Virus record (IMG/VR): IMGVR_UViG_3300038424_000251
Span: 301,300 to 365,299 of that record
DNA: 64,000 nucleotides
Reading direction: 5' to 3' (one strand)
Under the pieces are notes generated by a model that saw nothing but the letters and a program-made list of their open reading frames with translations, was not told the origin of the DNA and did not search any database. This document shows, piece after piece, positions 3,038 to 63,825 of this stretch; the first letter of the stretch is position 1, and every line of letters starts with the position of its first letter. Both the position numbers and the translations under genes were made by a program.

Positions 3038-3331
3038 ATGTTAATTTCTTTAGTTATATTGTTGTTAATATTATTAATAGTATCTGTTGTTTTCAACTTT
3101 CTCCTTTTAAAAGCAGGTGAACGACAACTTGTAATAAATGAATTGTATATAAGCTGGATATCTGAATGGAGAATACAAGTTCTAAAGACTTGGGCACATA
3201 TGAAAATGCTTGATGATAAGCAAATGTTTGAAAAAGACGATGAAGTTGGCATTGTATTTCAAGATATGAAAGACCTTATACAGAATCTTAATAATAGAAC
3301 TGAAGAAACCATAGAAGAAGAAGGAGAATAA
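3038..3331 (+). CDS. Small protein with an N-terminal membrane anchor
   Basis: About 24 hydrophobic N-terminal residues; tight operon spacing. Confidence 0.65.
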   Translation: MLISLVILLLILLIVSVVFNFLLLKAGERQLVINELYISWISEWRIQVLKTWAHMKMLDDKQMFEKDDEVGIVFQDMKDLIQNLNNRTEETIEEEGE

Positions 3332-3339
3332 AATTTTCT

Positions 3340-4269
3340 ATGAAGAAGAAAAAAACCCTGAAGCATAGTCATGTCCATAAATTCAATAAGAAGAATAGAA
3401 AACTAAGAAAAAAAACTATTCATCGAAAAAAAAGAGTTGTTCGTCATTATAGAAGAAAGGTGATGCGCCGATATCATAAGAAAAGAGTTATAAAAAATCC
3501 TATAATATCATCTGTATCTCCCATTGTAGTAATTACACCACCAAAACGAGGTAAAAGAAGTAGTAACACCTCCATTAGTAAGATGTATTTTACTAAAGAT
3601 ACTGAGGATTCTATTATTAAATATAATAACACAACTGATTCTCAAATTAGAGAAGATATTTACAATACTAAAATTAAACATCCGTTTGAAAAATTAGTTG
3701 AGAATATTTTTAATACATTTAAATTTAGTTATTTTGAAATTGGTCCTTTGGATGTTCAAAAAGAAACTGTCGCTCATTTAGTATCAAACATACATAAATT
3801 TGAAGCTGGAAAGGGTAAAGCTTTTTCTTATTTTTCAATTATAGCAAAACATTATTTAATTGCGTTAAATAACTCAACTTATAAAAGACGTAACCAACAT
3901 GTCGAAATAAGTGAAGAGCATGATGAAAATACAGTTCAGCTTCAAACCGAAGATAAACATTATAAAGATGCAGAAATGCATGAATTCATGGAGTTGATGA
4001 TAAAATTTTGGGAAAATAATGTAGGAAAAATTTTTACCAAACAAAGGGATTTAGATATAGCTAATGCGGTTATTGAATTGTTTAGAAGTTCTGACCGAAT
4101 AGATGCATTCAATAAAAAAGCTTTATATCTCTATATCCGAGAAATTTCGTCTTGTAAAACCCAGCAAATTACTAAAGTAATCAACAAGATGAAACAATAT
4201 CAAAATAACATATCCCGTTCTTATCTTAACCAAGGTTCTATAAATACCGAAAATTACATAAAGGTTTAA
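3340..4269 (+). CDS. Phage late-transcription sigma factor (gp55-like) with a basic N-terminal extension
   Basis: Sigma region 2-like segment HKFEAGKGKAFSYFSIIAKHYL, preceded by MYFTK..IIKYN; located next to late genes. Confidence 0.6.
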   Translation: MKKKKTLKHSHVHKFNKKNRKLRKKTIHRKKRVVRHYRRKVMRRYHKKRVIKNPIISSVSPIVVITPPKRGKRSSNTSISKMYFTKDTEDSIIKYNNTTDSQIREDIYNTKIKHPFEKLVENIFNTFKFSYFEIGPLDVQKETVAHLVSNIHKFEAGKGKAFSYFSIIAKHYLIALNNSTYKRRNQHVEISEEHDENTVQLQTEDKHYKDAEMHEFMELMIKFWENNVGKIFTKQRDLDIANAVIELFRSSDRIDAFNKKALYLYIREISSCKTQQITKVINKMKQYQNNISRSYLNQGSINTENYIKV

Positions 4270-4299
4270 TAAAATACCATACGCCTCTATTTATAGGGT

Positions 4300-4677
4300 A
4301 TGGAAACTGATTTTGAATTATTTGAAGGAAAATCCTTCAGGGATTTATGTAGAGATATTGTTACTAATCAAACTCATCGCAAAGAACAAATCGAAATTTT
4401 TATTGGAGATTTGCGTCCAATGATTAAAACGGTTAACGATGCTATGCAAGTTGTTCCTCTTATAAAACAATATATTGATGCAGGCATTTCTAATGACGAA
4501 CATCTTGTAAAATTGGCTCAAATTTGCCAAAGAATTATGGCTATTCAAGCTAATGTTGAAGCCGGTGGTGGTTCTTTTGGTCTTAGTGAAGAAGAAAAAA
4601 AAGAATTGATGACTACTATTGATGAGATTAAGAAATCAGATTCGGTTATTGTTAAAACTATTTCTCAAAAGGAATAA
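4300..4677 (+). CDS. Hypothetical helical phage protein
   Basis: Clean ORF with TATTTATA 4 nt upstream. Confidence 0.65.
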   Translation: METDFELFEGKSFRDLCRDIVTNQTHRKEQIEIFIGDLRPMIKTVNDAMQVVPLIKQYIDAGISNDEHLVKLAQICQRIMAIQANVEAGGGSFGLSEEEKKELMTTIDEIKKSDSVIVKTISQKE

Positions 4678-41492: not shown

Positions 41493-42122
41493 ATGAATAC
41501 TAAACAATTATTAGTTGATTGTATAACCTTTGAATTTATCAAAGATAATCTCTTTGAAGAAGCTATTCGTACTGATGGAAGACGATTGGTTGTCAAGGGT
41601 ATTTTACAACGAGCAAATATAAAAAATCAAAACGGTAGGCTATATAAGAAAGATGTACTTTTTCGTGAATCAAAAAAATATGAGGAAAACTTTGTAAAAG
41701 AAAGAAGAGCATTGGGAGAACTTGACCATCCAGAAAGCTCAGTTGTAAACTTACAAAATGTGTCTCATAATGTTGTAGAATTACATTGGGAAGGTGATGA
41801 CCTTATGGGAACTGTTGAAGTTTTACCTACTCCAAATGGAAATATTTTAAAGGAATTATTTAAAGCCAATATTCGACTTGGAATTTCCAGTCGTGGATTG
41901 GGAACAGTCAATAAAAGTATAAATGAAGATGCAGATGTGGTTCAAGATGATTTTGAACTTATAGCGTTTGATTTTGTATCAAATCCTAGTACAAGGGGCG
42001 CCTTCATGTTTCCATCGGGTACTCTTCAGGAAGGTGTTAAAACCACTATTCAAAATCCAATTACCCAAAAATGGGAAAGGGTTGAGAATATTGTAAGAGA
42101 TATTTTAACTGAAATTGAATAA
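41493..42122 (+). CDS. gp21: Prohead core protease (T4 gp21-like)
   Basis: KNQNGRLY, ALGELDHP (His), LGISSRGLG (Ser), FDFVSNPS. Confidence 0.93.
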   Translation: MNTKQLLVDCITFEFIKDNLFEEAIRTDGRRLVVKGILQRANIKNQNGRLYKKDVLFRESKKYEENFVKERRALGELDHPESSVVNLQNVSHNVVELHWEGDDLMGTVEVLPTPNGNILKELFKANIRLGISSRGLGTVNKSINEDADVVQDDFELIAFDFVSNPSTRGAFMFPSGTLQEGVKTTIQNPITQKWERVENIVRDILTEIE

Positions 42123-48436: not shown

Positions 48437-49036
48437 TTATCCTTCTTTTGGTTTTTTAACAACCCAAGGTTTTATTATCTTGCTTAGAGGAACTGTTGGA
48501 ACAGGTGCAATTGGTGTAGGGCCTTGGCTAAGTTTAGATACATTATATTCATATTTGTAAGCGTTAAAAATTCTGTATGTAAGACTTTCAGTATAACGCT
48601 GAAGTAATATAAGTTTTTCTTGAGCTGTAAACAGGTCGTCTCCTATTTTATGGGGGTCTGTGGATTTTAATCTCCTTCTTTTTAAATCTACATTATTAAA
48701 TTCCAAGTAATCACCAAAAGTATAATCGTGTATGTTATCAGCGATATCTTTTACTGATTTAACAACTTTCATTTTATCTCTAAAATCATTATAATAGTAT
48801 GATGGAAGAAATTTTCCTTGAGGACCACTAACATTACTAATTGTTTTTGATACTGATACGAATGGAATTCCTCTTAAATGTCTAAAATTTGAGTCAAGAT
48901 ACATTGCGTAATTTTCCTTATTGCCATCTACGAAAACAATAACTGAGGGGGTGGGTAAACTTTCCAACAAATCTACAATATGATTGACATCTAATGGAGT
49001 TCTGCCGCTTCTTGTCGTTTCTCCAACTTCATTTAA
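48437..49036 (-). CDS. Hypothetical protein, probably the -1 frameshift extension of the 49815 gene
   Basis: The frame stays open for 22 codons upstream of the weak TTG start, back to the A9 run, and reads LNEVGETTR; no ATG in this frame. Confidence 0.55.
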   Translation of the reverse strand, partial: LNEVGETTRSGRTPLDVNHIVDLLESLPTPSVIVFVDGNKENYAMYLDSNFRHLRGIPFVSVSKTISNVSGPQGKFLPSYYYNDFRDKMKVVKSVKDIADNIHDYTFGDYLEFNNVDLKRRRLKSTDPHKIGDDLFTAQEKLILLQRYTESLTYRIFNAYKYEYNVSKLSQGPTPIAPVPTVPLSKIIKPWVVKKPKEG

Positions 49037-49815
49037 TTTTTTTTTAAGTGTTGTTCGGTAAGACTTTCTTCTTCATCCGATACTTCACCTATTCTTGGAG
49101 CAGGTGCTGAAATTTCTTGTTGTGGAATTGCAGAAGCAATTTCGTCCAAGGATTGTATTTCAAAATATCTTTCCATTTTTCTACCCATATCTTCGTAAAG
49201 AGCATTTAATTGCTGAAGACCACCGTAACATTCTTTGGCTCGTTTTGAAAAATCTTTGGTAATCTTTTTTACTTCATTAAAATCTCTTTTGACAACTTCG
49301 GCTTGAAAATAATCACCAGATTCGGTCATAGCGTAAGATTCTGCCATTTGACCAATTTCAGAAAGATTTTTTGCCATTTCCATTAAAGCCGTTTCACATC
49401 GTAAAACTTTTCCATATTCGTTGAATTTGCTAACCTTCTCCATCAATTCTTTTTTTTGTTGTGGGGAAAGTTTTTTAACTTCATCACCAAATCTAGCACC
49501 ACCATCTCTGGGAATATTGGATAAATTTTCAACAATTTTCTTTAGACTAAACTCTTGTACTTCTAAATTTTCTTTCATAAGATTTTCGGTTTCTTCTTCT
49601 TTCCCAAACATTTTATCTTGACAGTTTTGGCAAAGACCACTAATTCTAAATTCTTTTCTACTTTGTTCATCACGAAATTTATTCACATCTACAGGTTTAT
49701 GACAGAAAGGACAAATTTTATCGATAATAGCTTTTTTTCTGTCAATGCCCGTTAATCTCTTGATATCAGTATCAAGTTGTGGATCTTTTTCAGCTGGGCT
49801 CCAATCGCCATTCAT
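49033..49815 (-). CDS. Head-associated protein with an N-terminal Zn ribbon and a helical domain
   Basis: CPFC..CQNCQD; LMKE, IVE and LTE sites; start set at ATG 49815, 6 nt after a minus-strand TATTTATA. Confidence 0.6.
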   Translation of the reverse strand: MNGDWSPAEKDPQLDTDIKRLTGIDRKKAIIDKICPFCHKPVDVNKFRDEQSRKEFRISGLCQNCQDKMFGKEEETENLMKENLEVQEFSLKKIVENLSNIPRDGGARFGDEVKKLSPQQKKELMEKVSKFNEYGKVLRCETALMEMAKNLSEIGQMAESYAMTESGDYFQAEVVKRDFNEVKKITKDFSKRAKECYGGLQQLNALYEDMGRKMERYFEIQSLDEIASAIPQQEISAPAPRIGEVSDEEESLTEQHLKKN

Positions 49816-49820
49816 ATGTC

Positions 49821-50123
49821 TTATAAATAGGGCCGGTTTTCCCATTTTTGCTTATAATTAGCAAAATATTCTTCAAGGTCTTTAAATTTTAGGAATGTTC
49901 GTTTTTCTTTTTTTGTTCTATCTTCAATAATAAAACCTGTGCCTTTTTTATGGCTTAATCTCATTTCTGGTCTTTTAAGAGCATAATAAAACATACCATC
50001 ATTTTTAAAACCCATATCTTCAAGATACATAGCATCGGTTGCTTTCCAATTATCAACCGGAGTTAATCCTTTATCACGTTCGTCGCTAACAATATGTTTT
50101 AATAATTCTGTAAGTTTAATCAT
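49821..50123 (-). CDS. Small protein with an MIKLTELL N-terminus
   Basis: Same N-terminal motif as 58046 and 40361. Confidence 0.6.
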   Translation of the reverse strand: MIKLTELLKHIVSDERDKGLTPVDNWKATDAMYLEDMGFKNDGMFYYALKRPEMRLSHKKGTGFIIEDRTKKEKRTFLKFKDLEEYFANYKQKWENRPYL

Positions 50124-50124
50124 A

Positions 50125-50904
50125 TTATAGGTCTAATTTTTTTAGAAATTCTACAAGAATAGCCGCGCCTTTAATATCATCTTTAAATAAAATAGATTTG
50201 GTAACGATGATATCTTCTTTTTCTTCTTCTTTTTCTTGTTGTTCAGGTTCAGCGGCTGGTGGAATTGGAGAACCCGGAGGAACTGCACCTTGAGGAAATG
50301 TTGGTGGTCCACCAAGACCGCCTGCGCTACCTAATCCAGCTTCAGTACCGCCAAGACCAGTAGCCATTTGTTTCTCTTGTTCTTTTTTCTTTTTTTCTTC
50401 GTCAGATATTGGTCTGTCATGTTTTTGAAAAGCTGTAAAAGAAAATTGACCACTATCTTTCATTTTCTTAATAACGGTAACATGACTGGTTCCAAATGGG
50501 TCTGTAGTTTTATACCATATTTCGGTTCTAGCAGTAGTGGTTGGTTTCTTTTCTTTGAAATTGTCCAATGCAGCTAATTCTCTTGGTGAAAAGGGTTGAC
50601 CGATGTAAGGTTTTATATATGTTGCCCATTCTTCTTTTACATGAAATGTGGTTGATACTGGGTCAATTGAAGTAGATTCTTCACCTACTTCATCAAGATA
50701 CATCGGTTCACGAATATCTTTAAGAATTGACAATACTGCTTTTTTGGTTTTTAATTCAGCTAAAGAATTAGCAAAATCATCAATATCAGAGTCACTCATT
50801 GAATTTGCTACTTTTCTAACATATGCACTTCCATAATCAGGGTCATGTTTTGCATGTCTTACTTTTTTAAAAAATTCTTGTTGGTTTAATGATTTGCTGG
50901 GCAT
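50125..50904 (-). CDS. Protein with an N-terminal DUF3008-like segment
   Basis: MPSKSLNQQ..VRKVANSMSDSDIDDFA resembles the MPAKS.AQQ..SMS...DFA pattern; Gly/Pro linker. Confidence 0.5.
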   Translation of the reverse strand: MPSKSLNQQEFFKKVRHAKHDPDYGSAYVRKVANSMSDSDIDDFANSLAELKTKKAVLSILKDIREPMYLDEVGEESTSIDPVSTTFHVKEEWATYIKPYIGQPFSPRELAALDNFKEKKPTTTARTEIWYKTTDPFGTSHVTVIKKMKDSGQFSFTAFQKHDRPISDEEKKKKEQEKQMATGLGGTEAGLGSAGGLGGPPTFPQGAVPPGSPIPPAAEPEQQEKEEEKEDIIVTKSILFKDDIKGAAILVEFLKKLDL

Positions 50905-51026: not shown

Positions 51027-51034
51027 TATTTATA
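51027..51034 (+). promoter_or_regulatory. Putative late promoter TATTTATA for the scaffold-capsid operon (representative of about 15 copies)
   Basis: The same octamer lies upstream of genes at 4288, 24030, 24904, 30530, 32764, 37400, 55629, 56299, 56712, 58361 and, on the - strand, 49822-49829. Confidence 0.7.
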
Positions 51035-51131: not shown

Positions 51132-52724
51132 ATGATTAATAGTGAACTATTGAAAGAAGCGATTGCTGATGCTAAGGCAGTAAGAGCCACTGCTCTCGCC
51201 AATGCTAAAGCCGCTCTTGAAGAAGCCTTCGCTCCCCGTTTTGAGGCAATGTTTGCCGACAAATTAAAAGAGGAATCCGAAGAAGAAGAAGACCAAGAAG
51301 AGGGACTACAGGAAGTAGAAGCTCCAAATCAGGTTCATGGAAGTGGTGGAGAAGCTAAGGGACCAGCAACCAAAGCCGTTTCTAAAGGTAATCCCAAAAC
51401 ACCAAAAGGTGGCGCCGGTGATGTGGATTTTAAAGCCGTTCAAGCTGGATTAGGCCCAACAGGCGTTCCTAAACTCGGTAAGAAAGTTAATGAAACTGCC
51501 GAAGAAGAAGAAGAGGAAGATGAAGGTAGGAAGAAAATGGATGAAACTGCCGAAGAGGAAGATGAAGGTAGAAGGGAAGAAGAGGGCGAGGAGGAAGATG
51601 AGGGTAGGGTTGAAGAAGCTGGTCTAACTTCGGAAGATTTAGATGAAATTATTGCAGAGTTGGAAAATGAAGTAGCAGAGGAAGAAGAAGGTAGAACGGA
51701 AGAAGAACCTGCTGCTCCAGAACTAACACCAGCACCAGAAGATAGTGGTGGAGTGTCATCGCCTGTTACTGGTGATGAAAGAGAACCCGTTACTGGTGAC
51801 GAAGAACCTGCTGCCAATATTGAAGCAGAACCGGGTAGTGAAGTTGATATTAATCTTGAACCGGAACCAGAAGCTGAACCGGGAGCTGATACAGTCCCCC
51901 CAACAGCTATGGATGCTGGTGGAGCAAGTAGGCGACCAGTTAGAGAACCTGCTGAAGAACCGGTTGAAGAACCTGTTGGAGCTGCAGAAGATGAAGAAAA
52001 TATCAATCTAGATGAATTACTCGCCGCTCTTAATGAAGAAGGCGAAGAAGAAGAGGAAGAAGAAGGGTATGAAGAAATGGATGAAGCCTTACAAAATCAA
52101 GGTCTTCCAACCAAAGAACTTGCTGGTCAGGACAAAACCGGTGGTGTAAAGGGTTATCCACCCGGTCCAGATGCTAGTAAGAGACAGCTACCGGGTAAAA
52201 ATCATAATATTCAAGGTAAAGGCAACATTGGTAGTGGGTCTGAAACAGGTAAACCAATGGCAGAAGCATCTCAATACAGGGTTGCTTTGAAAGAAGCCTA
52301 TAAAACCATTGAATTCCTCCGTGGACAAATTAATGAGGTCAATCTGTTGAATGCTAAACTACTTTACACGAACAAGTTGTTTAAAGAATTCGCAGGTGTT
52401 TTGGACGATTCATATCGTATGAAAATCGTTGAATCATTTGACCTAACAAAAAGTGTTCGTGAAGTCAAGCTGGCCTACGCCCTATTGGCGGAGTCCTTGA
52501 ATTTCGGTACGCAAATGACAAAAACCCACTCTGTAAAATCGGTTGTAAAACCGGTTTCGCAAAAGGGACAAGTTAAGCAAATTACCGAAGGATTCGCATC
52601 AAAGCCGGTGTCATCAACAAAACCTTCCAAGTTAATTACTGAAGGTAATGAGATGGCTCTTAGATTCAAGAAGCTCGCTGGAATCAAAGATACACCGAAG
52701 ACTACTACTCCTGAAAAGAAGTAA
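51132..52724 (+). CDS. Prohead core scaffolding protein (gp22-like)
   Basis: LLKEAIADAKAVRATALANAKAALEEAF, very acidic middle, INEVNLLNAKLLYTNKLF, ITE..RFKKLAGI; directly upstream of the MCP. Confidence 0.8.
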   Translation: MINSELLKEAIADAKAVRATALANAKAALEEAFAPRFEAMFADKLKEESEEEEDQEEGLQEVEAPNQVHGSGGEAKGPATKAVSKGNPKTPKGGAGDVDFKAVQAGLGPTGVPKLGKKVNETAEEEEEEDEGRKKMDETAEEEDEGRREEEGEEEDEGRVEEAGLTSEDLDEIIAELENEVAEEEEGRTEEEPAAPELTPAPEDSGGVSSPVTGDEREPVTGDEEPAANIEAEPGSEVDINLEPEPEAEPGADTVPPTAMDAGGASRRPVREPAEEPVEEPVGAAEDEENINLDELLAALNEEGEEEEEEEGYEEMDEALQNQGLPTKELAGQDKTGGVKGYPPGPDASKRQLPGKNHNIQGKGNIGSGSETGKPMAEASQYRVALKEAYKTIEFLRGQINEVNLLNAKLLYTNKLFKEFAGVLDDSYRMKIVESFDLTKSVREVKLAYALLAESLNFGTQMTKTHSVKSVVKPVSQKGQVKQITEGFASKPVSSTKPSKLITEGNEMALRFKKLAGIKDTPKTTTPEKK

Positions 52725-52766: not shown

Positions 52767-54614
52767 ATGGAAAATATTAAATCATTGTTAACAAACACTC
52801 TCAATCCTCAAGCTCGTTTGATGCAGGAAACCCGTGGTCTTGTGACCAAGTGGGATAAAACCGGTCTTCTTGATGGTATTAAGAGTGATATTGAGAAGTC
52901 CAATATGTCGGTCTTGCTCGAAAATCAGGCTAAACAACTGATTGAAGAAGCAACTGCTACTGGTACTTCCGCAAACTCTGAACAGTGGGCTGGCGTAGCT
53001 CTCCCGTTGGTCAGACGTGTATTTGCTGAATTTGCTGCGAAGGAATTCGTATCCGTTCAGCCTATGAACCTCCCATCTGGTCTTGTGTTCTACTTGGATT
53101 TCAAGTATGGCTCACCTCACGGTGGTAATCCTGCCGATACATCAGGTTCATATTATCAATCATTGTTCGGTGGTACTGGTGCTAAACTAGGTTCTACTGA
53201 TACATTCGGCGGTGGTCTATACGGCGCAGGCCGATATGGTTACACCATTAATCAAAAAGCTGCAACTGCAGTAACATTTAGTGCAGCTACATCAACATTG
53301 GAAGATATTGACTGGTTGGCTAATTATTATACTCAATATGCCTCATCTGGTTCAGTACAAGGAATTTTGAATAGTATTTCAGCATCGTTTAATAACAATC
53401 AGCTTATTACTTTTAAAACTTCAAATTTTTATAGTACTACGACTAGTCAAGGTAATCCGTTTGACCCATTAGCTGTTCGTTCATTCATGCCATATAGCAT
53501 TGTTACTGGATCTACAGCAGGGCTAACTGCTTCATTTCAATCAGGTAGTGCTGCCGGCTCCGGTCCTATGTATTTCCCACCATTTACAAAATTTGTAGTG
53601 GGTACTGGTATCGATGCTGGTGGTGCTCAGGTTGGTGAAATCCAGTTTGTCTTATCAGCTTCGGCTGGTGCTACTGGTTCCTTCACTGGTAATATTTATT
53701 ACACAGTTCAACCAAGCCCACAAGACCGTGGTGACTTCGAAGATAATCCAAACAATGCTAATGCTACTGGTACTGATACGGGATTTGTTTATGGAACAGG
53801 TAAGTCAACTACTGATACTGGTCTTAACAAGGATATCGGTATTCCAGAAGTAAACTTGCAACTTAACTCCGAACCAATCGTAGCTAAGACACGTAAGTTG
53901 AAAGCTGTCTGGACTCCTGAACTTGCTCAAGACTTGAATGCTTATCATAGCATTGACGCAGAAGCAGAATTGACTGCTCTGTTGTCTGAATATGTTTCAA
54001 TGGAAATTGACCTTGAAATTCTTGATATGTTGATTAACGCAGTATTACCTATCAATATTGAACGTTGGAGTGCAAGGCTTAATACGGAAATAGTTCCTAC
54101 TGGAACTGGTACTTACCAATTCGTTCAAACAACAACGGCAGGTACTGGTGGTTACTACACCAAGGCAACATGGTACCAAACTCTTGGTAACAAGATTCAA
54201 AAGGTATCCAACAGGATTCACCAATTGACGCTTCGTGGTGGTGCTAACTTCATGGTTATCTCCCCAACAGTGGCAACTGTTCTTGAATCTATTCCGGGAT
54301 TCGTAGTGAATACCGATGGCGACCAAGCAAAGTTTGCTATGGGCGTTTCAAGGGTTGGTTCATTTGCTTCAAGGTTCCAAGTTTACAAGAACCCATATAT
54401 GACTGATAATATCATTCTAATGGGCTTCCGTGGTAATAACTTCTTGGAAACTGGTGCAGTATATGCTCCATACATTCCATTGGTTCAGACACCGTTAGTG
54501 TATGACCCTGTGAACTTCACGCCAAGACGTGGTGTAATGACCCGTTACGCGAAGAAGATTGTTCGTCCTGAATTCTATGGCAAGATTTACATTGCCGATT
54601 TGGACACGGTATAA
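52767..54614 (+). CDS. gp23: Major capsid protein (T4 gp23-like)
   Basis: VSVQPMNLPSGLVFYLDF, AKTRKLKAVWTPELAQDLNAYH..DAEAEL, YAPYIPL, FTPRRGVMTRYA. Confidence 0.96.
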   Translation: MENIKSLLTNTLNPQARLMQETRGLVTKWDKTGLLDGIKSDIEKSNMSVLLENQAKQLIEEATATGTSANSEQWAGVALPLVRRVFAEFAAKEFVSVQPMNLPSGLVFYLDFKYGSPHGGNPADTSGSYYQSLFGGTGAKLGSTDTFGGGLYGAGRYGYTINQKAATAVTFSAATSTLEDIDWLANYYTQYASSGSVQGILNSISASFNNNQLITFKTSNFYSTTTSQGNPFDPLAVRSFMPYSIVTGSTAGLTASFQSGSAAGSGPMYFPPFTKFVVGTGIDAGGAQVGEIQFVLSASAGATGSFTGNIYYTVQPSPQDRGDFEDNPNNANATGTDTGFVYGTGKSTTDTGLNKDIGIPEVNLQLNSEPIVAKTRKLKAVWTPELAQDLNAYHSIDAEAELTALLSEYVSMEIDLEILDMLINAVLPINIERWSARLNTEIVPTGTGTYQFVQTTTAGTGGYYTKATWYQTLGNKIQKVSNRIHQLTLRGGANFMVISPTVATVLESIPGFVVNTDGDQAKFAMGVSRVGSFASRFQVYKNPYMTDNIILMGFRGNNFLETGAVYAPYIPLVQTPLVYDPVNFTPRRGVMTRYAKKIVRPEFYGKIYIADLDTV

Positions 54615-59334: not shown

Positions 59335-62300
59335 ATGCAATTTCCTAGTCGTGATTTTACCAATCAGTATATTTCTAAATCTTACCAAGATGTAGTCCAA
59401 CGATATGCTGATACAGGTTCTACCACTTATTTTTTAGATGGTCTTGGATATGTTATTGCGGGGATTCCGACATCTTCAATTGGTAATATCATTGTTACTC
59501 AAGATCAAACTGCTTCTTATTCTTTCTTTGCAATAACAGCTTCATACGCTGCTACTTCCTCAGTGACATATGTTACTTCTTCAATAACTTCTTCAGTAAC
59601 GTCAGCTATATCTGCATCATGGGCATCATCTTCGATTAGTGCGAGTTATTTTAGTGGTTCAATCGTATCAGCTTCTTTTATTAGTACTCCAAATATAGAT
59701 TCAAGTAACAGTTATCTTTATAGCAGTGGTAAATTTGTAGCAACCATAGAGGGTTCTCATACCGCAGTTTATAGCTTAAATGGTATTAACTGGAACGTTG
59801 TTACAATGCCCGGTGATTTTGGTTGGGATGGTTTAATTTATGGAAATGGTAAATATGTAGCCGTTGCATATTATAATACCAATGGTAGTGCATCAGCTTA
59901 TAGTTATGACGGTATTCATTGGTCATCATCTATCATGCCCGGTGGCTCTTCACTTTATTGGGCTAGTGTAGCTTATGGAAATGGTAAATATGTAGCTGTT
60001 GCAGATAATTTTGTTAATACTGCATCTTATAGTTCAGATGGAATAAATTGGTCAGCCTCTGTAATGCCTGATTCTCTTGAATGGTATTCTGTGTGTTATG
60101 GAAATGATAAATTTGTGGCAGTTACGTATGATGGGTCCAATACATCGAGTTATAGTTATGACGGAATTCATTGGACGGCTTCTGTAATGCCGGGAGTTCC
60201 ACCCATTTATTGGACTAATGTATGTTATGGAAATGGAAAATTTGTAGTAGTTCCAAACACTTCTAATACAGGAGCTTATAGTTATGACGGAATTCATTGG
60301 ACGGCTTCTGTAATGCCCGGAATATATTGTTGGAATAGTGTAATTTATGGGAATGGCAAATTTGTGACAGTTGAAGATAGTGGTGATATTGCAGCATATA
60401 GTTATGATGGAATTACTTGGTACTCTACTCCAATGCCTTTGTCTGGTTCTGGACTTTTCTGGATTGGTGTAGCTTATGGAAATGGAAAATTTGTAGCAAT
60501 TGCAGATACACCAGATACAGCTTATAGTTATGATGGTGTCAATTGGACTGCCTCCGTGATGCCTGTTAATTTGTCTGGTTGGTTTAATGTAGTTTATGGA
60601 AATAATGATGGTAATAACAATAGTAACAATATTTCTATTGATTGGCAAAATCAAATATTATCAGATGGTCTTTGGAAGGGTACAATTTTCAATGCTATAT
60701 CTTCCTCTTATGCAAATATTTCATCATTATCATTAGTTTCTGATGTAGCTTTGATAGCTGATACTGCTTCTTTTGCTGGTTTTACTACTGAACCTGTTAT
60801 ACATCTCTATGCATATCCACAGCCAATGTATTGTGTAGATATGAATGGAACTAGCAGTGGTTTCAAAATTTTTTCCGGTAGTGATTGTTCACCAATGATT
60901 CAAGCCGCTATTAATGACCCTATTAATTTTGCTAATATGGATTTGTTGAGTGGTAGTGTTCCAGTTGGGAGTAAATTAGTATTTGCTCCCGGTACATATA
61001 ATTGTAATAGCCCCATTTCTTTCTCTGTTCCAAATATTACTTTGCCAAATAGCACTAGAGGACCGGGTTATCCTGTTAATTACGTCATTGAAGGTGCTGG
61101 AAAATTTAATACTCAAATAATTTATACAGGTACAAATGCAATTAGTTCTAGTAATCCTAATACTGCTTCTGCTTTTATCACTATTGGAACTACGGGTCAA
61201 AATGATAATGCGTGGGTAAATTTTAGTGCATATGATATCGGATTCTGGTGTTGGGAACAACAATGTGCAGTTGTTTATGCTATTGGTTTTAATCAATGTG
61301 AATTTAATAATTGTGCATTTGGTAATTCTTATTCTTTACAAAATGGTCGTGTAGCTGGTTCTTCTATACAATTGGGTGTACCTGCTAATATTCCACCTTC
61401 TTTAATTTGTTTGTGGGCGGATGCAGGTGGAGATAATGCACTTATTGTGGAAAATCATTGTATTTTTTCAGGAGGTGCAATAGGATTATATTTGAATTGT
61501 GACCATGCTAGAATTGTTAATAGTGATTTTGGTGGATTTGGACAGTATAATACTGGTAGTGGTGGTGATATAGTTGGAACTTCATATTCACCATCAAGCA
61601 GTGTATTCAGTTTGGGTTCAGCAATATTGGATGCAGTTCGTCAAGAAATAGTTATTGAGGGATGCCATATGGTTAGTTGCGCAGGAGGTATTTATGCAAT
61701 TGCAAATCCTCAACGACCATATTATCAAGTTCCCTACCATCAATATTCATATAATTATAATGAATTTTGTAGTGGTTTTGATATTGGTATTCAAAATGAT
61801 TGGTTCTTATCAAGTGTAAAAAAAGCTCAGTTTAATGCTGAGCAAAATATGTTTTATAATCAAAATTATGGTTCCATATCTTCGGGGTCTGGATATTGGA
61901 CTGGTAGTAGTATTTTTCCGAGTTATCTTTCTTTACAATTTACTCAAGTAACCAATGCTGGAAATGGTCCTTCTGCATCTTTAAATCTTTGGGGTCTTAC
62001 TAATATACAAAATGGTGTTATAATAGGTTCTTTGACTGGAACTTCAAGTTGGTCAAACAATTCAACTTCAAGTAGTTATGCTATAACTGCTTCTTGGGCA
62101 CCAACACCAACAAATGTAACAAGTTGTAGTTATATATCTTCTTCAACTATAGATTCTGGTAATGGTTTACTTTGTTTAGCCACTAGTCAATCGATGTTTG
62201 TATCAGTTACAAATAGTACTTTTACATCTTCATATAGTTATGACGGTATAAATTGGACTGCTTCTATAATGCCCGCTCCGCTTATTTGGTCATATGCTGC

Positions 62301-63825
62301 ATATGGAAACAAAAAATTTGTAGCTGTATCAAATAGCAGCTCTACATCTTCATATAGTTATGACGGTATAAATTGGACTGCTTCTGCTATGCCTGCTTCT
62401 CTTCAATGGGATGGAATTACTTATGGAAATGGAACATTCGTAGCAGTTGCGTATAATTCTAATGTAGGAGCTTATAGTTATGATGGAATTAACTGGATAT
62501 CTTCTTCAATGCCTGCTACTCTTAATTGGCAGAGTGTGGCTTACGGAAATGGAGTATTTGTAACAGTCGCTGTAGGTTCTAATACGGGGTCTTATAGTTC
62601 TGATGGTATAAATTGGACTGCTTCTGCTATGCCTGCTTCTCTTAATTGGCAAAATATAACGTATGGAAATGGGAAATTTGTTATAGTTGCATACAATTCT
62701 ATTTCAGGAGCTTACAGTTATGACGGTATCAATTGGACATCTTCTACAATGCCTCTTTCACGTCTCTGGGAAAGTGTTACTTATGGTAATGGAACTTATG
62801 TAGCTGTTGCAAGAAATTCTCTAACTGCCTCTTATAGTTCCGATGGTATTAATTGGACATCTTCCAGAATGCCTGCTTCACTGTTTTGGAGTAGTGTTAC
62901 CTATGGAAATGGAAAATTTGTAGCTGTCACAATCAATACTGCAACCTCATCATATAGCTCAGATGGTATCAATTGGACATCTTCTAAATTGCCGGCTTCA
63001 CTTCAATGGATAAATGTAACGAATGGATTTGGTAAAACTTTCTATGTTCCATCAATAGATTGGCAAAATAATATGTTAGCAGATGGAATTTGGACTGGTA
63101 ATATCACCAATGCAAATCTAGCTACTTCATCAATTTCAAGTTTATTCGCTTCCCAATCTTTAAGTGCATCGTGGGCATCTTCATCTATTTCGTCAAGTTA
63201 TGCAATAACTGCTTCTTGGGCTCCGATGCCCGATGTAAGTAATTCGTCATCTTGGGCTTCTTCTTCTATTAGTTCAAGTTATGCTATAACTGCTTCTTAT
63301 GCTCCATTTACAGATAATCCAAATGCAACATCATCAAGTTGGGCAAGTTCATCTATTAGTTCATCTTGGTCAAATATATCAATTTCCTCAAGTTACGCTC
63401 TAAGTGCTTCGTGGGCTCCGGGTGGTGGTTCATCTGTAAGTGCTTCTTGGGCATCAAGTTCATTGGGAGATGTTCCTGTTGGTTGTGTAGTGGCTTGGTT
63501 GCAAAATTTGAGTGGAACACCTGCTTTACCAAGTAATTTTGTTCAATGTAATGGTCAAACAATTACCGACCCACAAAGTCCTTATAGTGGATCAACAATA
63601 TCAAACTTAAATGGTTCTGGTGCTCAAACCCAAAGATTTTTAAGAGGTTCAACAACTTCGGGTGGAACGGGTGGAAGTGATACCAATACACACTATCATA
63701 ATATAACATTTAATCAGAATGCCGCAGGGTCAAGTCCTTGCAGTGCAAACGGTTCAACAGATAATACAACCATAAGCATACTTCCATCTTATTATGAAGT
63801 TGTCTGGATAATTCGTATAAAATAA
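59335..63825 (+). CDS. Large tail fibre/receptor-binding protein: two beta-propeller blocks, a central beta-helix-like domain, Ser-rich stalks and a C-terminal tail-collar domain
   Basis: About 40-aa SYDGI.WT.S.MP..W..V.YGNGKFVAV repeats in two blocks; MIQAAIN..LVFAPGTY..IEGAG pectate-lyase-like start; VPVGCVVAW..PSNFVQCNGQ..RFLRG collar. Confidence 0.8.
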   Translation: MQFPSRDFTNQYISKSYQDVVQRYADTGSTTYFLDGLGYVIAGIPTSSIGNIIVTQDQTASYSFFAITASYAATSSVTYVTSSITSSVTSAISASWASSSISASYFSGSIVSASFISTPNIDSSNSYLYSSGKFVATIEGSHTAVYSLNGINWNVVTMPGDFGWDGLIYGNGKYVAVAYYNTNGSASAYSYDGIHWSSSIMPGGSSLYWASVAYGNGKYVAVADNFVNTASYSSDGINWSASVMPDSLEWYSVCYGNDKFVAVTYDGSNTSSYSYDGIHWTASVMPGVPPIYWTNVCYGNGKFVVVPNTSNTGAYSYDGIHWTASVMPGIYCWNSVIYGNGKFVTVEDSGDIAAYSYDGITWYSTPMPLSGSGLFWIGVAYGNGKFVAIADTPDTAYSYDGVNWTASVMPVNLSGWFNVVYGNNDGNNNSNNISIDWQNQILSDGLWKGTIFNAISSSYANISSLSLVSDVALIADTASFAGFTTEPVIHLYAYPQPMYCVDMNGTSSGFKIFSGSDCSPMIQAAINDPINFANMDLLSGSVPVGSKLVFAPGTYNCNSPISFSVPNITLPNSTRGPGYPVNYVIEGAGKFNTQIIYTGTNAISSSNPNTASAFITIGTTGQNDNAWVNFSAYDIGFWCWEQQCAVVYAIGFNQCEFNNCAFGNSYSLQNGRVAGSSIQLGVPANIPPSLICLWADAGGDNALIVENHCIFSGGAIGLYLNCDHARIVNSDFGGFGQYNTGSGGDIVGTSYSPSSSVFSLGSAILDAVRQEIVIEGCHMVSCAGGIYAIANPQRPYYQVPYHQYSYNYNEFCSGFDIGIQNDWFLSSVKKAQFNAEQNMFYNQNYGSISSGSGYWTGSSIFPSYLSLQFTQVTNAGNGPSASLNLWGLTNIQNGVIIGSLTGTSSWSNNSTSSSYAITASWAPTPTNVTSCSYISSSTIDSGNGLLCLATSQSMFVSVTNSTFTSSYSYDGINWTASIMPAPLIWSYAAYGNKKFVAVSNSSSTSSYSYDGINWTASAMPASLQWDGITYGNGTFVAVAYNSNVGAYSYDGINWISSSMPATLNWQSVAYGNGVFVTVAVGSNTGSYSSDGINWTASAMPASLNWQNITYGNGKFVIVAYNSISGAYSYDGINWTSSTMPLSRLWESVTYGNGTYVAVARNSLTASYSSDGINWTSSRMPASLFWSSVTYGNGKFVAVTINTATSSYSSDGINWTSSKLPASLQWINVTNGFGKTFYVPSIDWQNNMLADGIWTGNITNANLATSSISSLFASQSLSASWASSSISSSYAITASWAPMPDVSNSSSWASSSISSSYAITASYAPFTDNPNATSSSWASSSISSSWSNISISSSYALSASWAPGGGSSVSASWASSSLGDVPVGCVVAWLQNLSGTPALPSNFVQCNGQTITDPQSPYSGSTISNLNGSGAQTQRFLRGSTTSGGTGGSDTNTHYHNITFNQNAAGSSPCSANGSTDNTTISILPSYYEVVWIIRIK

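Follow-up and report, generated by a model that had tools for sequence, protein, structure and literature searches.

Bacterial RNA polymerase has been described to slip efficiently on runs of nine A or T residues, its RNA:DNA hybrid comprising 9-10 bp, and this behavior is put to productive use in the dnaX gene of Thermus thermophilus (PMC5009743). In phage T4, the protease gp21 cleaves after the glutamate of an L/I-x-E motif (PMC9026906), and a highly diverse set of internal proteins enters the prohead by means of a short propeptide which gp21 removes (PMC3012670, PMC9026906). In this study, we investigated a locus in which features of both systems are found together, located in the final 64 kb of a single virus record of 365,299 bp with 33% G+C (IMG/VR record IMGVR_UViG_3300038424_000251, positions 301,300 to 365,299); this whole stretch of 64,000 nucleotides is referred to as the window, and its first letter is position 1. 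On the minus strand of the window, the end of a gene for a predicted helical protein (the carrier) is overlapped, at a run of exactly nine A's (A9), by a long open reading frame (ORF) in the -1 frame (the cargo). In our reading, to which we assign a probability of about 0.6, slippage on A9 would join the two into a fusion protein, which would be loaded into the phage head and cut there by a protease to release the cargo. That the locus undergoes programmed recoding, by transcriptional slippage or by ribosomal frameshifting, appears very probable from the comparison of related sequences. Our literature search found neither programmed transcriptional slippage nor a site of this kind reported for a phage head gene, and the nearest mention was of a frameshifted methyltransferase in Campylobacter phage CPt10 that is presumed to be rescued (PMC2853527).

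The A9 junction and the frame that opens at it

The carrier gene (49033..49815, minus strand) encodes 260 aa from the ATG at 49815 and ends in LKKN before its stop; a further in-frame ATG at 49845 overlaps the preceding gene. Read in the codons of this gene, which we call the 0 frame, the minus strand across the junction is GAA CAA CAC TTA AAA AAA AAT TAA ATG AAG. The nine A's (49045-49037, T9 on the plus strand) begin in codon phase 2, on the last base of a 0-frame codon, and contain the heptamer A_AAA_AAA in the 0 frame, and the TAA stop (49035-49033) starts two bases past the run, compared with 1-9 nt past it in relatives. The -1 frame is closed by a TGA at 49075-49073, ten codons 5' of the run; it reads KKKLNEVGETTR, and across the run RRKSYRTTL-KKK-LNEVGETTRSGRTPLD, and stays open as far as the stop at 48439-48437, so that the cargo ORF (48437..49045, minus strand) has 202 codons counted from the first AAA. 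The first-pass annotation of this DNA, made from its letters, had described the nine A's, the heptamer just before the 0-frame stop, the TGA shortly upstream and the unbroken passage through KKKLNEVGETTR into the downstream ORF, and reading the strand confirmed each of these. It had further held that the downstream ORF has no ATG start of its own. No ATG, GTG or TTG does occur between the TGA and the run, but an internal ATG is present at 48904-48902 (residue 48), which gene callers use to yield a 155-aa product (P0003); the earliest start-type codon of the extension is the TTG at 48970-48968 (residue 26). The ATG right after the 0-frame stop (TAA ATG AAG) opens a mere 13-codon ORF (49033-48992, minus strand), and the TAAATGA string that recurs in relatives is a side effect of encoding [LI]-N-E in the -1 frame.

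Homopolymers are error-prone on some sequencing platforms, and a real tract of A10 would turn the two ORFs into a single gene. The window, however, has A9, as do four IMG/VR assemblies of differing metagenomic origin that are identical through the junction, and eight public peat or wetland runs (Logan), each assembled separately at 5-20x depth, displayed no substitution and no gap over the stretch. Moreover, the same out-of-frame A9 was found in 17 distinct sequences originating from many projects and assemblers. Because the four IMG/VR and eight run-level assemblies are identical, we regard the assembly error that had been offered as an alternative as excluded for all practical purposes. Among the listed public runs containing this phage, none was an RNA run.

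Conservation of the tract and its possible decoding

DNA was recovered for 49 distinct loci of the carrier family, and these were tabulated by run length, codon phase and frame of the extension. At 17 of the 49 loci, exactly nine A's were followed by an extension in the -1 frame, with the run in phase 0 or 2 and extensions of 115-535 aa, apart from one 62-aa case ended by its contig. Two loci (L048 and L123, different in sequence) carry A9 with a 450-aa module, here called type-G, in the +1 frame; one (L053) carries A10 with a related module in the +1 frame; and two (L128 and L129) carry A8 with an ordinary cargo in the +1 frame, for which the in-frame length would be A10, as in the majority. 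The other 27 loci have neither a run nor a same-strand extension, and often a terminator-like hairpin and a convergent gene come next. The extension was thus absent from 27 of 27 loci without the run, and in L054 the run has decayed to A6 and the extension is gone. When related genomes are searched for a conserved slippery site or an in-frame fusion, as the first-pass annotation had proposed, it is the site that is found: A9 recurs in 17 relatives, with A_AAA_AAA in frame in the window and in all A9 relatives irrespective of phase, and an in-frame fusion occurs at none of the 22 loci harboring tract and extension, the sole A10 locus being out of frame as well.

A maximum-likelihood tree of the conserved carrier domain placed all 21 shift loci that it contains in one clade (support 100/98), L123 having been lost at core trimming. 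The basal members of this clade of T4-like giant phages carry A9 with a -1-frame extension and ten cargo-less members are nested within it, a topology which suggests that the A9/-1 arrangement is ancestral and has been lost repeatedly. The A8 of L128 and L129 was read from run-level assemblies and may represent natural variation in tract length or error. One relative (L023, positions 3046-4647 of IMGVR_UViG_3300038428_000448) displays two A9 tracts, the first of them out of frame; inserted at its junction is a 95-aa module that brings a further family-tail copy, EEEETTSLQEASLKKK, and a second A9 (3333-3341), which is in frame with a 450-aa type-G module. Since the same type-G module directly follows the family gene, in the +1 frame, in L048 and L123, the tail and tract seem to act as a module-exchange junction, and the duplicated tail suggests cassette exchange at this point. 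Compared with the cargo profile, the type-G module gave E 0.05, which is not significant.

The two ORFs could also be two ordinary genes, the downstream one starting at TTG 48970, at ATG 48904 or by reinitiation, with A9 as the mere KKK C-terminus of the first. Gene callers do start the downstream ORF at an internal ATG, here and in related genomes, and a TTG is present at residue 26. However, all 17 A9/-1 lineages lack ATG, GTG and TTG between the upstream stop of the alternative frame and the run, and in every lineage this frame is open exactly from the run. The first start codon drifts from residue 16 to residue 61 of the extension, and L027 has no ATG at all in 170 codons. The cargo modules of 14 lineages form one alignable family (20-59% identity), in which L4, E6, G8 and P17 are invariant, all of them 5' of any start codon in the window. 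From this alignment, AlphaFold2 (AF2) predicted an alpha/beta domain with a mean predicted local distance difference test score (pLDDT) of 74, above 90 for residues 11-40, and a predicted template modelling score (pTM) of 0.65, and the strand at 10-15 and the helix at 20-29 belong to the predicted fold. Because the residues before the start codons are conserved and part of this fold, independent starts at TTG 48970 or ATG 48904 are unlikely. Additionally, the downstream ORF is lost together with loss or decay of the run, KKK is written with AAG nearly everywhere else in the genome, and no promoter-like or terminator-like site was found between the two ORFs on the minus strand. These features speak for translation of the downstream ORF out of the carrier gene and against a start of its own, and we consider two separate genes highly improbable. 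A HMMER search with the cargo against 1.8 billion representative proteins returned three relatives only (P0003-P0005), each starting at an internal Met in its gene call and none of them an in-frame fusion. The proposal that programmed recoding, by frameshift or slippage, appends a cargo is accordingly supported by the 17 A9 loci, the open extension, the missing start codon, and the conserved and confidently folded first 25 residues.

We also considered the genome-wide use of such tracts. The 365-kb genome holds four A/T runs of at least nine, against about 26 expected from its composition. The other three sit inside ORFs in which the alternative frames reach a stop after no more than a few codons, and on this ground they were rejected as further recoding sites. 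AAA makes up 80.5% of the Lys codons in 255 long ORFs, yet KKK is spelled AAA-AAA-AAA in 2 of 56 occurrences against 29 expected, the other 54 being interrupted by AAG. The scarcity of long runs and the AAG-broken KKK indicate that the genome avoids exactly the sequence kept at the junction. With such runs avoided genome-wide and the tract nevertheless conserved in 17 distinct relatives, the A9 site is, by these counts, more than a product of chance. Strict A9 conservation beside genome-wide A9 avoidance offers a clean natural test case for the effect of run length on product ratio.

What is read directly from these sequences comprises the site, its conservation and independence of codon phase, the missing start codon, the conserved and foldable N-terminus of the trans-frame product, the protease gene and the synteny. 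In the mechanism that we propose, normal decoding would give the short protein, consisting of the helical domain and an acidic tail ending in LKKN, and in some expression events an additional A would be read, so that translation would run on in the -1 frame. The likeliest cause would be RNA polymerase slipping on the nine-base homopolymer to give A10 transcripts, and we rate this somewhat better than even. A classical -1 programmed ribosomal frameshift, in which tRNA-Lys pairs move back by one base on A_AAA_AAA, would yield an identical fusion with the same role; the product of both would be ...HLKKKLNEVGE..., and protein-level evidence does not discriminate between them. The ribosomal shift finds some support in the heptamer, in frame in every A9 relative, in the 0-frame stop 1-9 nt past the run, a layout common at frameshift sites, and in the low-level unstimulated -1 shifts used by tailed phages, such as lambda G/GT (PMC5009743).

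Slippage is favored, first, because a length of nine is kept at 17 of 17 -1-frame sites irrespective of codon phase (0 or 2), when seven A's would be enough for the heptamer, and because nine matches the RNA:DNA hybrid and is the length at which bacterial polymerase slips efficiently. Secondly, five loci (L048, L123, L053, L128 and L129) need the +1 frame, which takes one A deleted or two inserted and which a -1 ribosomal shift cannot deliver. Thirdly, no downstream structure is conserved: in eight folded lineages, no conserved RNA stimulator was detected downstream of the run, with z from +0.6 to -3.4 and one of the eight below -3, a point tempered by some phage sites needing no stimulator. 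Finally, the avoidance of A9 even inside KKK implies a cost dependent on run length, which suggests a length-dependent and codon-independent process. Out of the two mechanisms first put forward, polymerase slippage therefore fits better, and -1 ribosomal frameshifting fits less well and is judged rather unlikely.

A third route to both products is a DNA phase switch, in which replication slippage would toggle the tract between A9 (short protein) and A10 (fusion), making the population heterogeneous and not each cell. Homopolymers of about nine are hypermutable, relatives do vary in tract length (A8 in L128 and L129, A10 in L053), and the contig data are compatible with minor A10 genomes. Against this, the 12 assemblies of the phage, which differ in sample and year, are all A9; none of the 22 loci with tract and extension is fixed in frame, the single A10 locus included; and no in-frame fusion was found in the 1.8 billion representative proteins. 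The out-of-frame state has been kept while the cargo diverged to 20% identity, pointing to selection for both products from one genome. Because this state is fixed everywhere, and no lineage has a fixed in-frame fusion, the phase switch raised by the first-pass annotation is unlikely as the main mechanism, and we hold it to be improbable.

The carrier family, the protease motif and the head module

The carrier protein consists, in order, of an N-terminal Zn-ribbon, a conserved helical domain and an acidic disordered tail. The Zn-ribbon (CxxC...CxxC, residues 37-86, 49588-49737, minus strand) corresponds to phrog_19722 (E 1.7e-10), and was the only hit over threshold when the ORF was searched against Pfam and PHROGs. 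Most family members are 175-200 aa long (about 185 aa) and lack the Zn-ribbon, and a smaller group of about 245 aa resembles the window protein in having an N-terminal part of similar length that carries the ribbon; an internal Met of the window protein (…NLMKENLEV…) falls at the start position of the short relatives. The family counts 146 homologues, none of them annotated. A tblastn search of the family against GenBank phages returned just two distant matches, Microcystis phage Mel-JY01 and an unannotated 484-kb phage, a megablast search of the region against GenBank phages returned none, and profile searches of the family and cargo alignments against PDB sequences gave nothing. The AF2 model of the carrier consists of long bundled helices followed by an acidic tail that is disordered, and fold searches with the family model gave merely generic helical-bundle matches (Z up to 8.7); this combination fits a core- or scaffold-type protein, the predicted fold itself being generic. 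Certain distant family members (P0119-P0127, 326-388 aa) display in-frame C-terminal arrays of repeats of about 25 residues, N[IL]KSQRxLPxxGP…VKEV, and these repeats, each ending in xKE, may be arrays of cleavable peptides.

The helical domain (49141..49578, minus strand) is 76-88% identical among relatives whose cargo is 20-59% identical. Compared with the window, L051 has 59% identity in the cargo and 80% in the carrier, and L017 has 42% and 72%, respectively; by these figures, the cargo evolves far faster than the carrier. Neither Pfam nor PHROGs gave a match over threshold for the window cargo ORF and four other cargo modules. We do not call the cargo a protease: papain-like, C39 and C58 folds recur below threshold, but there is no conserved Cys or His. 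The nearest neighbours of the cargo in a protein language model are RHS/TcdB-tip clusters at 0.87, which serves as a lead only.

The genes around the junction place it within a T4-like head module. A T4 gp21-type prohead protease (Peptidase_S77, PF03420, E 1.7e-27, exceeding the curated cut-off) is encoded at 41493..42122 and a T4 gp23-type major capsid protein (PF07068, E 9e-72) at 52767..54614, both on the plus strand. Between the protease gene and a scaffold-like gene followed by the capsid gene lies a four-gene minus-strand unit (50904..48437), of which the carrier and cargo ORFs form the end; its two upstream genes (259 aa and 100 aa, 49821..50904, minus strand) are syntenic in relatives. 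The scaffold-like gene (51132..52724, plus strand), directly 5' of the capsid gene, encodes an acidic 530-aa protein with 14 [LI]xE motifs, which had no match in family searches and is likely, from its position and composition, to be the main scaffold candidate. Five distant relatives (35-63% identity) likewise have the family gene between Peptidase_S77 and gp23-type genes, on the opposite strand as in the window and 3-5 kb from the capsid gene, and in Mel-JY01 the homologue comes directly after a 'putative prohead protease' in a T4-like head module. Altogether, a helical, acidic gene product encoded between the protease and major capsid genes was found in seven genomes. The earlier description of the ORFs as head-associated holds as far as this conserved synteny goes; the upstream protein had no match to a Pfam or PHROG head family.

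The protease encoded at 41493..42122 is the enzyme that we expect to cleave after [LI]xE, its specificity being assumed from T4. In the -1 frame, L-N-E (49028..49036, minus strand) is a candidate gp21-type cleavage site, at which cleavage would free the cargo as VGETTR. All 19 cargo-family extensions (the 17 A9/-1 loci and the two A8 loci) have an [LI]xE motif that begins 5-10 residues from where the run starts, in the forms LNE, INE, LFE, LTE, LLE, ILE, IIE and LKE, against a background of 7.9% for such a window in the proteins of this genome. The earlier suggestion that LNE is a putative protease site is consequently supported by the gp21-type Peptidase_S77 in the window and by the motif following the run in all these loci. 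Upstream of the run, a nearly invariant L-[DE]-E directly follows the helical domain in the family, and in the window this domain ends in a nearly invariant L-D-E (49149-49141, minus strand); in the family alignment, L149 is nearly invariant and E151 invariant. A second conserved candidate site, I-G-E (49084..49092, minus strand), lies in the acidic tail and takes the form [IVLM]GE in relatives. In the capsid protein, residues 58-62 read L-I-E-E|A, roughly at the position of LTE|A in T4 gp23.

Taken through to the head, the proposed fusion would consist of the helical domain, an acidic linker, KKK, [LI]xE and an alpha/beta cargo of about 200 aa. The helical domain would bring the fused cargo into the prohead core, where the gp21-type protease would cut after [LI]xE (LNE|VGE here), and probably also after the upstream LDE and IGE, so that the cargo would be freed within the capsid, as with the T4 internal proteins and by the logic of Gag-Pol. 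The occurrence and rate of slippage, incorporation into the head, cleavage and the role of the cargo are what we infer.

Several points weigh against this chain of events. The comparative evidence for recoding is strong and lies at the level of sequence; the putative head role of the carrier family is suggested by conserved position and motifs. Homology of the family to T4 gp22 and gp68 was rejected, with hhalign probabilities of 0.2% and 0.1%, respectively. That the protease of this phage cuts after [LI]xE is assumed from T4, and the type-G module has no [LI]xE close to its junction. Searches with the cargo model against PDB, BFVD, AFDB clusters, ESM Atlas and VIA-align wide gave no confident match, the best fold matches being at Foldseek E 2.6e-4 with TM 0.35, and at Z 5.7. 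The tract was compared at contig level, where minor DNA subpopulations of A8 or A10 are below reach. Defective alleles or errors at low coverage could also underlie the +1-frame and A8/A10 variants; against this, the A9/+1 arrangement recurs in two different sequences. A translational contribution is also conceivable, as A_AAA_AAA is a valid -1 heptamer in every A9 phase and tRNA-Lys might slip by +1. Ribosome sliding on poly(A) is another translational option, which occurs mostly on longer tracts.

Some further features of the genome were recorded. The T4 late-promoter-like octamer TATAAATA is enriched window-wide (28 copies against 14.8 expected, a count of 28 being reached in 0 of 100 shuffles), and one copy at 51027-51034 on the minus strand lies about 120 nt 5' of the first gene in the minus-strand unit. 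A PF00562 profile search detected no phage-encoded RNA polymerase, and a PF00940 search for RNA polymerase gave no match but is uninformative, its control having matched nowhere either. A 1496-aa ORF at 59335-63825 (plus strand) has weak Pfam matches to EPTP repeats (E 1.8e-9) and a GFP-like domain (E 1.2e-4). In the 368,758-bp relative that is the record of L039 (G001), the gp23-type match falls in two stretches (91495-93003) with one in-frame TAA, which could reflect an intron, a frameshift or an error.

Comparison with known recoding and head-loading systems

The junction resembles the A9/T9 slippage systems of Thermus thermophilus dnaX, Shigella mxiE and some IS transposases in that a nine-base homopolymer has the length of the RNA:DNA hybrid and such runs are avoided elsewhere in coding sequence, and two products with a common N-terminus would be made in a set ratio, as they are in those systems (PMC5009743). 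Unlike them, it would act in a phage head-module gene and would open a separate, fast-evolving trans-frame domain behind a protease motif. If our reading is true, a head-morphogenesis case would join the short list of productively used transcriptional slippage sites, and, depending on whether the offset at the tract is +1 or +2 A, one cargo module or another would be opened. Homopolymers at which +1 or +2 insertions open different C-terminal ORFs are also found in paramyxovirus P/V/W, Ebola virus GP and potyvirus P3N-PIPO, and may be set beside the -1-frame and +1-frame modules of this family; those RNA viruses stutter with their own RNA-dependent RNA polymerase (RdRp), whereas here the host RNA polymerase is presumed to act, since none encoded by the phage was detected.

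Among phages, lambda G/GT, T7/T3 10A/10B and the Listeria phage capsid shifts are likewise conserved two-ORF morphogenesis genes with a C-terminally extended minor product (PMC5009743). These cases are ribosomal, operate at specific heptamers or proline codons, and occur in tail chaperone, major capsid and tail genes; none of them has a length-conserved A9 or a prohead-protease motif next to it. Again, lambda G/GT lies between the tail tube and tape-measure genes, whereas the gene studied here lies between the prohead protease and capsid genes.

With the T4 internal proteins (IPI, IPII, IPIII and Alt), the locus shares a gp21-type protease, an [LI]xE between a presumed targeting part and the cargo, and a variable cargo joined to a conserved targeting part (PMC3012670, PMC9026906). 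T4 internal proteins that act against host defences show the same pattern as the contrast between cargo at 20-59% and carrier at 76-88% identity, and by this analogy the cargo domains are candidate anti-defence or host-takeover factors. Standard annotation misses the putative fusion in all these genomes, the cargo being called from an internal Met or dropped, and for this reason the injected-protein repertoires of uncultured giant phages may be under-counted.

In retroviruses and totiviruses, Gag-Pol follows a related logic, in which a minority passenger, joined by frameshifting to an assembly protein, is thereby packaged and is then freed by the viral protease (PMC5009743); here, by contrast, the virus is a double-stranded DNA tailed phage, a homopolymer stands in place of a heptamer with a pseudoknot, and the passenger is not a polymerase. 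More tentatively, and at slightly less than even odds, the locus may be a Gag-Pol-like device in which stuttering of the host polymerase on A9 fuses a tunable minority of a core protein to an exchangeable effector, which is then packed, released by the protease and injected. T4 internal proteins carry an in-frame N-terminal propeptide of about 10 residues, an arrangement that differs from the one found here, where the presumed targeting part would be a whole protein of 180-260 aa that also occurs by itself, and the cargo is C-terminal and would be joined solely by a change of frame. If true, this would signify a capsid-loading route distinct from the N-terminal targeting peptide of T4, in which an assembly protein is borrowed by means of a frame change.

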